Translations under genes and position numbers: made by a program
Notes under the pieces: model-generated
Database searches by the model: none
Seen by the model: the letters and a program-made list of their open reading frames with translations, nothing else
What the model was told of the DNA's origin: nothing
Shown here: positions 19,031 to 25,564 of the stretch, in pieces
Layout of the letters: every line of letters starts with the position of its first letter
Position numbering within the stretch: position 1 is the stretch's first letter
Sequence record: NC_010537.1
DNA: 41,172 bases
Direction: 5' to 3' (one strand)

Positions 19031-19814
19031 TTAAATCTTCATATTCTTCCTTTTTCATTTCAATAGCGTGCTGAATTTCATAACGTAGTTCGTGCAGTGA
19101 CAAATCCCATACCTTGAAGCAATGCTTGTTGTACGTACAATACGTGTATTCGTCTATCGGGTCTATTGGAATACCGATAAGGTTTTCCTTAAACCCGTGA
19201 GCGTTAAGGTAAATAGGTACAACCCCTAAAGCCATTGCTTCAATAGGAGGTATTCCGAATCCTTCAGACCTTGATAAAGCAAGGAAGAACTTACTCCTAG
19301 CATAGAGCCTATATTTATCTTCTTCACTTAATTGGAAGGTTTGGTAGTCGGGGTTGCCTAAATTGCCTACGATAATTGTTTTGTCCCTAACGTTAAACTG
19401 TCTTGTTACCTCGTCCGCAAGGATAAGGTTCTTCCTATCGAAATACCTACTCTCCCCGAGTGTAATAAATAACTTGTCCTTTTTCTCTTTCACGAAAATA
19501 GGCTTAATGTGCCTCTTCCTTACTTCCTTAACCTTATATCCTAACTTGATAAACATTTCATAATTCCAATAAGAGGGGACAATGAAATTATCGTATTTAG
19601 CCATTTCATCCTTATAGTATAATGCGTTATATACAGTATCACCCCATAAGAGGCAATGTACCTCGTCCTCAAGTCCTTTTATCCTTTTCAGAAATAGGAC
19701 GGGGTCATCGATACAGATATCGGCGTCAAAGAGGTTTCCGGTTATTTCGAACCCTTCATATTCCGCTACTTTCTCATAACTGCAATTTTCACAAGGGACG
19801 TATGCCTTAACCAT
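18963..19814 (-). CDS. GT-B (GT4-like) glycosyltransferase, 283 aa
   Basis: SRSEGFGIPPIEAMALG motif; N-terminal CENCSYE. Confidence 0.9.
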   Translation of the reverse strand: MVKAYVPCENCSYEKVAEYEGFEITGNLFDADICIDDPVLFLKRIKGLEDEVHCLLWGDTVYNALYYKDEMAKYDNFIVPSYWNYEMFIKLGYKVKEVRKRHIKPIFVKEKKDKLFITLGESRYFDRKNLILADEVTRQFNVRDKTIIVGNLGNPDYQTFQLSEEDKYRLYARSKFFLALSRSEGFGIPPIEAMALGVVPIYLNAHGFKENLIGIPIDPIDEYTYCTYNKHCFKVWDLSLHELRYEIQHAIEMKKEEYEDLSEKAKNKARGYFSGSVDSCDFS

Positions 19815-20463
19815 ATATATCAACCGGCTTAGGTATCGTTACAGCGTTTACTATTTCATTACATAATTCGCTTTTAGCTTTATTAAATACTCCTCCTTCC
19901 TTGTACCTCCATTCGAGAAAATTCCTACTGCATGTAAAATATATCCCGGATTCATAATTCTTCATACTCCCGGTAATTCTGACCAACAGATTGTAATACC
20001 TATCCCTCCAACCCTGAAAATTAAAGGGTATGAACACGGTACCATGAACCTCCAGCCTCGGTATCGTTAGGTTATATGTGTAGTATGTCCTAGATTTACT
20101 GTCTATAGGAGTGAAATTTATGAAAAACCCGAGAGGGGTAAGCTCTCCAGATATATTATATCTATCAAAGAATAATGCAAAACTTATGTATTTATACAGG
20201 TTCATCGTCCCGTCTTTTACGGCTTTTTCTATAAACCTGCGTAGCATTATTTCCGTCATAAAATCACAAGGTTTCCCCGTATATTTGTAAAATTCCTTAA
20301 ACTCGTTTACTATTTTTTCAGAAATCGGTAGCCTCAGTATATCGTAACCTAAACCTTTAATATTAATTATGTATTGTTGGTATATATTACTGAACCCGCT
20401 TAATTTTATTTCAATATCATATTTATCACATACTATCTCATTTTCAGTAACTATCAGAATCAT
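19807..20463 (-). CDS. Hypothetical protein, 218 aa
   Basis: GGAGGTG RBS at 20476-20470 supports ATG 20463 rather than 20550. Confidence 0.75.
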   Translation of the reverse strand: MILIVTENEIVCDKYDIEIKLSGFSNIYQQYIINIKGLGYDILRLPISEKIVNEFKEFYKYTGKPCDFMTEIMLRRFIEKAVKDGTMNLYKYISFALFFDRYNISGELTPLGFFINFTPIDSKSRTYYTYNLTIPRLEVHGTVFIPFNFQGWRDRYYNLLVRITGSMKNYESGIYFTCSRNFLEWRYKEGGVFNKAKSELCNEIVNAVTIPKPVDIYG

Positions 20464-21253
20464 ACACGGCACCTCCGGAATCGCCGGGTACGGATACTGC
20501 CTTAACTTTGAACCCTTTCTTGAAGCGAAGTATGTAATTACCATTAGCAACGTAGTTTATTTCAACATTATCACTAACCACCTCACCTTCCCTCATTCCC
20601 GATACTGCACTATACAACTTTAGTTTCATTCCGACTTTCAACGGGGGGCAGTCCTCTCTTCTAGGCAGTATATCGGGTAACTTCGAAGCATATGTATATT
20701 CACCAAGAACGGCACTAATAACGCCGTAAGCACACACTTCTTTTCCCATGACACTCAATAGCTTATAGGGATATGTGTAATTAGTATACATTATAGCTAC
20801 TTCGTATTCACCCTCGAATATGTATTTTTTCAGTATGTAGTTCGTGAGTACTACGGGAGGAGTAAGTATGTGAACCCTCCATCTACGGTTTTGGAAATAC
20901 CCCGCATTAGGTACGTTTATAGACTCTCCTCCCTTGTAAGTAGCGGTCATGGCGACATGCCATGCGGTTACACCGTAGTTCTGGAAAATGAACCCCATGC
21001 TACCGGTAGAGGAATAATACGTAATACCACGGTTTAATAGAAGACCGTTAGGATGAGTACCCAACCATTCCGGTTCCGTAAGCATGAGTGTATCTATACG
21101 TAAATCCGTTATTGCGTCTTCATTATACTTTTCAGTAGAACTTACGGGATTTAACGGGACGAGCTTATAATGGGAAGGTGGTATTAAGTCCTTATATTTA
21201 GGGTTATACTCTATGAGTTTATTACGTTTATCAACAGCATATGCGATTTCCAT
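20444..21253 (-). CDS. Putative chymotrypsin-fold serine protease, 269 aa
   Basis: STGSMGF, GVTAWHV (H99), YEVAI (E151), KVGMKLKLYSAVSGMREGEV, SVPGDSGGAV (S259). Confidence 0.65.
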   Translation of the reverse strand: MEIAYAVDKRNKLIEYNPKYKDLIPPSHYKLVPLNPVSSTEKYNEDAITDLRIDTLMLTEPEWLGTHPNGLLLNRGITYYSSTGSMGFIFQNYGVTAWHVAMTATYKGGESINVPNAGYFQNRRWRVHILTPPVVLTNYILKKYIFEGEYEVAIMYTNYTYPYKLLSVMGKEVCAYGVISAVLGEYTYASKLPDILPRREDCPPLKVGMKLKLYSAVSGMREGEVVSDNVEINYVANGNYILRFKKGFKVKAVSVPGDSGGAVYDSDSY

Positions 21254-21376
21254 ATTTTTAATGTTGCCGGAAAAGTTTTAAATTAATCAGGAAGGAGGTA
21301 ATTACCTTAGACATAATGTATTGTATCCACTTGTAATTTATAACACGACAACATAATAACAAATCAGTGGATAGAT

Positions 21377-21616: not shown

Positions 21617-21898
21617 TTACATATCTCCTTCACACAGCTTACTCTTTTTCAATTCCGGTACATGTGTACACAAAACTAAGACGATTGCGTTAAGCTTCTT
21701 ACTTATTTCACTCTCATTTAATGCCTTAATGATTATCTCGGTCATTTCCTCACTTTGCATGTATTCCCTTACCTCTTTCCTTATTTCCTCCTTTTTAGCA
21801 ACGGCATTAATATGTTTTATACGCATGAGTGTGTATATGATGGATACAATATAAAATAAACTGGAAATCATGTAAATAATTTGGAATAACATTGCCAT
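21617..21898 (-). CDS. Probable virus-associated pyramid (egress) protein, SIFV gp43-like, 93 aa
   Basis: TGATG overlap start; single N-terminal TM followed by a helical soluble part; size and position next to a glycosyltransferase agree with gp43 as recalled. Confidence 0.55.
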   Translation of the reverse strand: MAMLFQIIYMISSLFYIVSIIYTLMRIKHINAVAKKEEIRKEVREYMQSEEMTEIIIKALNESEISKKLNAIVLVLCTHVPELKKSKLCEGDM

Positions 21899-22890
21899 CA
21901 CAATATCTTCTCCCATTCTTTTGCCATATTCAAGTAGCTGTACCTTTCTCTATAAAGTACAGCCCTATTCTCTAGGTTCTCCTTCTTCTTATCTAAGCTC
22001 CAATTAGCCAACGCAATTACTAATTTCTGGTATGCGTCCTCAGTATCGGGGTCTAGGAAATAACCTACATGAAAGGGGTTTGTATACCACAGTTTAACTT
22101 TCCTACCTACTTTAATCCAATAAGCGTCTTCCTCGGACAAAACCCATTCACTCCACGCACCTTTTTCCGTAACCACAACGTCCAAACCTAAAGCCAACGC
22201 TTCTATCACCGGTATTTCAAACGCACCTCCACGAACGGGGTAAAATAAGATATCACACCCTGCAAATATCGAATAATAGTCCGGGTCTGGTAGAGGTGTC
22301 TTTATTGCGTTTAGTCCTCTTAATCTGGGTTCCAACATATTAGACACCAAAATCAGAGGGTAGAAATGGTACCCGGCTTTCATCAGTTCTTGGAATACTT
22401 TAACCACCACATCTCCTCCTTTTCTGTCCCAACTGTGAGGCAATATTGCAAGGACGCATGGGTGTGGCATTTCCTTAGGAGGATACGAAAACATGTCCGG
22501 GTTTAAAGCATGCGGGATAACGTAAATTGGCTGAGGTATGGGTAATTTAAGAGTATAGAAAGCGTTTTTAGACCATTGTGATGGTACTACTATTTCATCA
22601 ACCGGTTGTTGTCTGAAAAAATATAAAGCGGTATGGCTCACCGCATCGGTGTCCGCTACTTCGAAAACTATATTTTTACCGTGATGAGAGATACCCTTCC
22701 AGAATAATTGAGTATTGTAAATGGTATAATAGATATAATCGTTAAAACCCGGAGGTAGGTCTTCTTTTCTGGTCTTGTTTTTATCGAAGGGTATAACTTC
22801 ATGTCCTAACTCTTTCAGCCCCTTCTCTAATAATTTACCCTGTCTACCGAAACTGGTATCGATGAAGTCCCTAACCAAAGCTATCTTCAT
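21898..22890 (-). CDS. GT-B (GT4-like) glycosyltransferase, 330 aa
   Basis: VVPSQWSK, VIPHAL, WDRKGGD and GGAFEIPVIEALALG motifs. Confidence 0.92.
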   Translation of the reverse strand: MKIALVRDFIDTSFGRQGKLLEKGLKELGHEVIPFDKNKTRKEDLPPGFNDYIYYTIYNTQLFWKGISHHGKNIVFEVADTDAVSHTALYFFRQQPVDEIVVPSQWSKNAFYTLKLPIPQPIYVIPHALNPDMFSYPPKEMPHPCVLAILPHSWDRKGGDVVVKVFQELMKAGYHFYPLILVSNMLEPRLRGLNAIKTPLPDPDYYSIFAGCDILFYPVRGGAFEIPVIEALALGLDVVVTEKGAWSEWVLSEEDAYWIKVGRKVKLWYTNPFHVGYFLDPDTEDAYQKLVIALANWSLDKKKENLENRAVLYRERYSYLNMAKEWEKIL

Positions 22891-25107: not shown

Positions 25108-25539
25108 ATGAGCTATTATTATGAGGAAGAAACGGTAGACGTTCTTGATATTTTTAAATTACTGAATACAATCCAATATAAAAACCCTGCACAATTCAGA
25201 CAGCTTTACATTAATACGGTATACCAGTTCCTATACGATGTTTCACTGTACTTACCTTATTTCCCGCCCGGTAATTATACATTATTTGAAACTGACAACT
25301 TCTCATTATACATATCAAATAATACAATAAAAGCGACATACAACGGGTTTCAATTAATAGGGTTACTTAATATAGCACAAACAATAGCACAAATATTAAA
25401 CTTCGATTTTGCACTACTCAACTCGTTCTTAAGTGCGGTATACTACAACTTGACTCAGATAGCTAAGCAAATAATACCGCCCGATAACGTTAAAAAGTTT
25501 CTCCAGGACTTGTATAACTTATTGGTAAGCAAAGCATAA
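25108..25539 (+). CDS. Hypothetical protein, 143 aa
   Basis: AGGTGAG RBS before ATG 25108. Confidence 0.75.
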   Translation: MSYYYEEETVDVLDIFKLLNTIQYKNPAQFRQLYINTVYQFLYDVSLYLPYFPPGNYTLFETDNFSLYISNNTIKATYNGFQLIGLLNIAQTIAQILNFDFALLNSFLSAVYYNLTQIAKQIIPPDNVKKFLQDLYNLLVSKA

Positions 25540-25564
25540 ATATTTTGGATACAGTCATTATATC

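Follow-up and report, generated by a model that had tools for sequence, protein, structure and literature searches.

In the canonical chymotrypsin fold, three strands and a C-terminal helix follow the catalytic Ser residue, and the last two of these strands build the S1 pocket. Serine proteases of this fold can be virion components: the alphavirus capsid protease (togavirin, MEROPS S3) adopts it and at the same time serves as a structural protein of the particle. Togavirin frees itself from a polyprotein by cleavage, after which its C-terminus blocks the enzyme. In rice NAL1, an active triad is assembled only upon oligomerisation and strand exchange (PMC12012508). For the enveloped lipothrixviruses, maturation, crossing of the S-layer and opening of the exit pyramids are largely obscure, and a 10-kDa protein, gp43, is reported to build six-sided virus-associated pyramids (PMC10791045). 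Here we analyse open reading frame (ORF) 269 (AFV9_gp40) of Acidianus filamentous virus 9 (AFV9, Betalipothrixvirus uzonense), whose genome of 41,172 bp (NC_010537/EU545650) matches the window with 100% identity. ORF269 lies on the minus strand at positions 20444-21253 and encodes a product of 269 residues, which an earlier note on this DNA had read as a chymotrypsin-fold, Nal1-like serine protease that stops short. Our analyses lead us to propose, with moderate confidence, that it is a complete, accessory serine endopeptidase of clan PA, as predicted from its fold and motifs, which only some betalipothrixviruses encode and which is reported to occur in the virion. We found no paper describing a protease in lipothrixviruses, in agreement with the note, which knew of none for this genus, and a mention in recent structure-based annotation surveys is possible.

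The assignment to the chymotrypsin fold is backed by structure models, structure comparisons and profile-profile alignments. AlphaFold2, run with an alignment of 22 sequences, produced a confident single-domain model for ORF269 (predicted local distance difference test, pLDDT, 91.9; predicted template modelling score, pTM, 0.91), and an independently built model of the AFV6 orthologue from BFVD superposes on it with a template modelling (TM) score of 0.90. A Foldseek search of the PDB with the ORF269 model returned chymotrypsin-fold proteases for almost all of the best 50 matches, with a probability of 1.00. Rice NAL1 fills places 1-28 (E values of 5e-5 to 1.6e-3), followed by Mycobacterium tuberculosis Rv3671c/MarP, the Streptomyces Glu-specific protease and streptogrisin B (SGPB), and V8 protease, trypsin and coronavirus main proteases are found lower in the list. 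The TM-scores to these PDB proteases are modest (0.3-0.5), as would be expected if part of the ORF269 chain runs in a different order (see below). At the sequence level, the closest relatives outside the family (P0028-P0031) include proteins with the Pfam signature Nal1_C (PF25819). Using hhalign, the family aligns with the Nal1_C-bearing proteins over 175 columns, from THPNG to GDSG, with 97% probability and an E value of 6.7e-11. It also aligns with streptogrisin B (91.5%, E value of 8.5e-7), with TAWH on TAGH, GDSGG on GDSGG, and His99, Asp/Glu151 and Ser259 on His57, Asp102 and Ser195, respectively. The streptogrisin B sequence used here was checked over residues 91-147, which agree with the PDB alignment.

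Other searches weigh against this assignment. No protease family in Pfam, NCBIfam or PHROGs reaches the threshold for ORF269, and Pfam yields no match at all even at E values up to 10, including Trypsin_2 (PF13365), Trypsin (PF00089) and Nal1_C; Trypsin_2 is touched by only 2 of the 22 homologues, with a best E value of 0.005. The only sequence matches in the PDB are streptogrisins A and B and the S. fradiae serine proteinase, at E values of 0.04-0.9, with the four best profile matches all aligned on VGM...G.T/SG...G.V...PGDSGG. If these results were taken alone, the protease-like motifs might have arisen by chance in an unrelated beta-rich protein. However, the hhalign E values, the Foldseek list filled by protease folds at full probability, and the presence of invariant motifs in the correct order leave that explanation a next to nil probability. 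Taken together, the profile alignments, the Foldseek matches and the conserved motifs make a distant homology of the ORF269 family to Nal1_C- and streptogrisin-type proteases well supported.

The motifs singled out in the earlier note are all present at the positions given there, as read directly from the ORF269 sequence: TGSMGF (residues 83-88), VTAWHV with His99 (codon 20957-20959), YEVAI with Glu151 (codon 20801-20803), KVGMKLKLYSAVSGMREGEV (residues 206-225) and SVPGDSGGAV with Ser259 (codon 20477-20479). To assess their conservation, we collected the family. Among phage records, translated searches retrieved orthologues only from AFV3, AFV6 and AFV8 (ORF267b, 49% identity). Large protein collections add metagenomic relatives, for a set of 22 homologues of 261 to 282 residues with identities down to 27%, and an exhaustive profile search found just a handful more. 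Across the 22 homologues, 24 of the 269 columns are invariant. They include W63 and T66-H-P-N-G70, which form the motif W63-x-x-T-H-P-N-G70 (21044-21067, minus strand, as are all the features of the gene given below), T96-A-W-H99 (20957-20968), the predicted motif of the catalytic His, and P256-G-D-S259-G260, part of the P256-G-D-S259-G-G261 segment (20471-20488) predicted to provide the nucleophile and the oxyanion hole. T96-A-W-H99 is comparable to the TAGH or TAAH motifs of S1 proteases, and the counterpart of W63-x-x-T-H-P-N-G70 in the alignment with Nal1_C-type protease domains is the motif RP(I/A)HPG at their start. The His-acid-Ser order is kept in all 22 homologues. His67, within the W-x-x-T-H-P-N-G motif, is a second invariant histidine of the family.

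The third member of the triad deserves separate consideration. Position 151 (20801-20803 in ORF269) is acidic in all homologues, with Asp in 18 and Glu in 4 (AFV9 has Glu), and it belongs to a [DE]-[VIL]-[AS]-[ILV] motif, which makes it the candidate acid. The streptogrisin B alignment places Asp/Glu151 on Asp102, in a low-confidence stretch. A different placement argues against residue 151: both the Nal1-like alignment and the spacing to VGM in streptogrisin B put the Asp102 site at Ala175-Tyr-Gly-Val-Ile, a segment that resembles Asp-Tyr-Gly-Ile-Val of streptogrisin B and in which the family has no acidic residue, this alignment also being of low confidence. The invariance of the acid at 151 and its surrounding motif favour residue 151 as the putative triad acid.

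The most unusual feature of ORF269 is its end. As the earlier note had pointed out, the chain stops 10 residues after Ser259. Beyond the Ser motif, only AVYDSDSY and the stop codon remain (20444-20470), and this tail contributes one short strand to the model (residues 262-265). The two strands and the helix expected after the Ser residue, which comprise the S1 pocket and the substrate-binding strand 214-216, are not found there in linear order. We followed up a proposed comparison of stop positions and observed that all 22 homologues end 6 to 14 residues after the Ser, with the AFV3, AFV6 and AFV8 orthologues ending at GDSGGAVYI.

In AFV9, the gene for ORF218 (19807-20463, minus strand) overlaps that of ORF269 by 20 nucleotides in the +1 frame, and its product begins with MILIVTENEIVC. 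The sequence GGAGGT (20471-20476), which corresponds to the codons for Gly260 and Gly261, is located 7 nucleotides upstream of the ORF218 ATG (20463) and, as had been proposed, is likely its ribosome-binding site. The overlap, this site and the strand-like peptide at the start of ORF218 had raised the idea of a split or recoded enzyme, with ORF218 providing the C-terminal strands by frameshifting or as a separate subunit. Several observations speak against it. No homologue of ORF218 is present in other phage records, the protein matches no Pfam or NCBIfam entry, and its sole strong PHROG match covers all 218 positions of a profile that may contain little besides ORF218. It is an AFV9-only orphan placed between the protease and glycosyltransferase genes. 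Downstream of the orthologues in AFV3, AFV6 and AFV8 is a 59-nucleotide AT-rich spacer followed by the gene for a small membrane protein, ORF71, while the protease gene is directly followed by a glycosyltransferase gene in the metagenomic contig L008 and by ORF95 in contig L005; four different downstream neighbours occur among the relatives. Lastly, searching the six frames of the AFV9 genome with a profile of the canonical post-Ser region gave a best E value of 0.34, at an unrelated site (25458-25562). Because the place of the stop characterises the whole family and the downstream gene is not kept, we reject the completion of the enzyme by ORF218, an explanation that we consider highly improbable. 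ORF269 is complete as encoded, neither split nor frameshifted.

If the protein is complete, its missing strands might be sought at its other end. The first ~75 residues had been suspected to be a propeptide. However, residues 1-26 (21176-21253) are as conserved as the core (0.59 versus 0.53), with Tyr5, Asp/Glu8, Asn11 and Lys12 among the conserved positions, and they are modelled with pLDDT values of 94-97; we thus rejected the propeptide hypothesis. They are followed by a linker, residues 27-60 (21074-21175), which is the most variable part of the protein (conservation of 0.44). In the model, residues 1-26 consist of a strand (2-8), a second strand (13-16) and a helix (18-23), as determined using DSSP. 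The succession of strand 262-265, the chain end, and then strands 2-8 and 13-16 and helix 18-23 corresponds one for one to the canonical post-Ser elements, with loop lengths of the N-terminal elements similar to the canonical ones (compare P0028, ...GDSGSPVFIKKENGKYQLVGIIYAGSSTKTLVIPIQNILEAF), and the hhalign alignment of a permuted profile passes through the junction in the expected register. We infer from the model that the ORF269 family may be a circular permutant of the chymotrypsin fold, opened at the hairpin after the Ser-bearing strand, in which the conserved N-terminus would supply the two strands and the helix that normally follow the Ser. We know of no other circularly permuted chymotrypsin fold.

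A number of results limit the case for the permutation. Five sequence-based tests yielded no significant support for it. Firstly, relative to the native family profile, a permuted hidden Markov model of the family gained only 2 bits against the non-permuted P0028 (34.9 to 36.9). Secondly, the E value of the permuted profile against the PDB went from 0.13 to 0.044, with an unchanged aligned span. Thirdly, the hhalign scores of the native and permuted profiles are close, at 76.9 and 77.2 against the Nal1_C-type proteins and 48.6 and 49.0 against streptogrisin B. Fourthly, a profile of the N-terminus alone missed the post-Ser region, with its best match elsewhere (P of 0.62), and lastly, the canonical post-Ser profile did not find the ORF269 N-terminus in the six-frame search of AFV9. 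When ORF269 is modelled without residues 1-26, the core remains confident, and residues 27-42 lose model confidence, which indicates that they depend on the N-terminal hairpin. With this shortened model, the NAL1 matches in Foldseek are ~20-fold weaker, which suggests that the N-terminus may instead resemble a part of NAL1 that precedes the protease; that is, these residues might be similar to the domain located before the NAL1 protease domain. The same search adds alpha-lytic protease and NAPase to the matches, with TM-scores of 0.41-0.51 normalised to the target.

Completion of the second barrel in trans would be another way to obtain an active protease, by swapping of the N-terminal hairpin of a neighbouring subunit or with the help of a viral cofactor protein. 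Viral cofactors of this sort have precedents, with NS2B for flavivirus NS3 and NS4A for the NS3 protease of hepatitis C virus. The lack of post-Ser strands is in keeping with such an arrangement, as are the oligomerisation and strand exchange required by NAL1, the closest solved relative (PMC12012508), and the proximity of the gene for the small membrane protein ORF71/72 in the cultured viruses and in contig L008. On the other hand, AlphaFold2 places the N-terminus in cis (pTM of 0.91, pLDDT of 94-97), and ORF71 is kept in AFV7, which is devoid of the protease gene, so that it is not a dedicated cofactor. We therefore consider completion in trans quite unlikely, and completion in cis by the N-terminus is the arrangement that we favour.

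Whether ORF269 is a working enzyme is a distinct question. Its deposited label is "viral structural protein", which is also borne by ORF167, ORF204, ORF162 and ORF214. Its full-length match in PHROGs (residues 1-265, E value of 3.6e-157) is to PHROG 18698, "virion structural protein", a name that holds no functional information beyond the deposited annotation of ORF269. After the AFV6 orthologue, the best viral match to its fold is VP3 of Pyrobaculum filamentous virus 1 (PFV1, Tristromaviridae; BFVD entry A0A140F3K9), with an E value of 1.4e-4 and TM-scores of 0.47/0.54, which exceed those of all canonical proteases. In the PFV1 virion, VP3 is a sheath protein associated with the membrane (PMC7189273, PMC12662031). 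In line with the label and with this match to a sheath protein, ORF269 might be an inert structural protein, in which a protease fold was recruited as a building block of the envelope or matrix and the truncated second barrel has no working substrate site. The absence of the S1-pocket strands from their normal place and a possibly unoccupied Asp102 site would also fit. However, an inert protein leaves unexplained the invariance of His99, of the acid at 151 and of Pro-Gly-Asp-Ser-Gly at 27-30% identity, where only 24 columns are invariant, and we regard it as unlikely. The maintenance of the full set of catalytic motifs over such deep divergence argues for a working enzyme, and on these sequence grounds we consider it rather likely that the ORF269 product is catalytically competent.

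The fold match with VP3 may reflect a protease-derived virion protein shared by the two virus families. VP3 is described as an 18-kDa protein, and the matched entry has 230 residues, a size gap that may alternatively be a sign of processing. A bolder scenario combines these elements: ORF269 would be a circularly permuted chymotrypsin-fold protease, active inside the virion and of common ancestry with the tristromavirus VP3 sheath protein. We give this combination a small chance of being correct. If it is, enveloped filamentous viruses of archaea from two families would use a protease-derived protein to construct or service their envelope layer, and a working enzyme would enter or leave the cell with AFV3, AFV6, AFV8 and AFV9, for example to cut S-layer or envelope glycoproteins.

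The genetic environment of ORF269 provides further indications on its role. The presence of pyramid and glycosyltransferase genes around it is as described in the earlier note. ORF269 heads a run of overlapping minus-strand genes that comprises ORF218, the glycosyltransferase ORF283, ORF214, ORF162 and ORF74a, and the operon to which it belongs also encodes MCP1 and MCP2, the capsid proteins, as well as glycosyltransferases. The sequence TTTAAAA (21276-21282, minus strand), 23-29 nucleotides upstream of the ORF269 ATG, is presumably a TATA-box-like element of a Sulfolobales-type promoter, which would suit a leaderless first gene of an operon. In AFV9, the other neighbours of ORF269 are ORF72 and ORF94c (21617-21901, minus strand). 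The latter, a hypothetical protein in the AFV9 record, is 83% identical to SIFV0043 (89 residues), which is presumably the gp43 pyramid protein. Across the family, the protease gene is always found among GT1/GT4 glycosyltransferase genes, with the MCP1/MCP2 capsid operon nearby on the longer contigs; in AFV9, two such glycosyltransferase genes flank it.

The distribution of the gene bears on its role, as it is absent from AFV7, SIFV and SIFV2, whose capsid genes are detected. In AFV7 (L013, 4878-4978), only ~100 bp separate ORF95 from ORF71, where AFV3, AFV6 and AFV8 carry the protease gene. This absence indicates an accessory gene rather than a maturation protease needed by the whole genus, and a general maturation function is thus ruled out. 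Two gene orders were observed: GT279(-), ORF95(-), ORF267b(+), ORF71(+) and GT330(-) in AFV3, AFV6 and AFV8 (L002-L004), and GT(-), protease(-), ORF72(+), ORF94(-) and GT330(-) in AFV9 and contig L008.

Its operon and its deposited label both point to a protein of the late phase that is associated with the virion. ORF269 would be expressed late, as the leading gene of the structural operon. ORF269 has no obvious signal peptide or membrane segment, as judged by reading its sequence. Most probably it would target virion or host envelope proteins during particle assembly, exit or entry, and its substrates would not be the capsid proteins common to all members of the genus.

Additional observations concern the cysteines of the family and its non-viral relatives. 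The AFV-like subfamily harbours Cys174 and Cys202 (codons at about 20732-20734 and 20648-20650 in AFV9), and the other subfamily, found among the homologues P0012-P0022, is devoid of these residues and has Cys at positions 189 and 263 (GGGCY) instead. The two pairs are alternative candidate disulfides, and a 189-263 bond would put strand 186-191 beside the post-Ser strand. Among the non-viral Nal1_C-type proteins, P0028, P0029 and P0030 differ from P0031 by SDENV in place of SNNHV and by Ala in place of the Asp in VVDGAIAEL, and are possible pseudoproteases. Their fusion partner is either a TPR-like region or a caspase (PF00656) domain, an arrangement reminiscent of conflict-system proteins.

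ORF269 would be the first protease described for lipothrixviruses. As a conserved, predicted serine protease, reported in the virion and encoded near pyramid, glycosyltransferase and capsid genes, it offers a testable handle on poorly understood steps of the viral cycle. If its N-terminus completes the barrel, it represents an unusual case in protein evolution, and if the match with VP3 holds, it is a second virion protein common to Lipothrixviridae and Tristromaviridae, beyond the capsid proteins. In practical terms, PHROG 18698 and four RefSeq genomes could receive a sharper label than "virion structural protein".

Comparisons with described proteins help to situate ORF269. Togavirin is released from a polyprotein, whereas ORF269 is encoded by a stand-alone gene and its chain ends a few residues after the Ser; togavirin is absent from the best 50 Foldseek matches of the ORF269 model. 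Streptogrisins A and B and alpha-lytic protease (MEROPS S1) share the PGDSGG region with ORF269, with Foldseek TM-scores of up to 0.51 when normalised to the target. Unlike these S1 enzymes, ORF269 has ~50 extra residues, forming 4-5 strands, between the His and the second barrel and an extra 174-191 hairpin, but it has no signal peptide or pro-region, its post-Ser strands are not in place, and plain hidden Markov model searches remain below threshold.

Rice NAL1 is the best Foldseek match (E value of 5e-5). Its triad, H234/D291/S385, has a similar spacing to H99/E151/S259 of ORF269, and both proteins have extra strands in the first barrel, and their domains begin with an HPG-type motif. NAL1 has 73 residues after the Ser, including the last two strands of the barrel, in contrast with 10 in ORF269, and its N-terminal, ATP-binding and full serine protease domains are arranged in a hexameric cage. 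The sequence match with ORF269 covers the protease core only; at this level, ORF269 has no N-terminal or ATP-binding domain of the NAL1 type, and the C-terminal third is absent. With PFV1 VP3, the likeness is a match of folds, with no detectable sequence similarity, and while VP3 is a major component of the sheath, ORF269 is the product of an accessory gene. Both are nevertheless reported to be part of the virion of a filamentous archaeal virus with an envelope.

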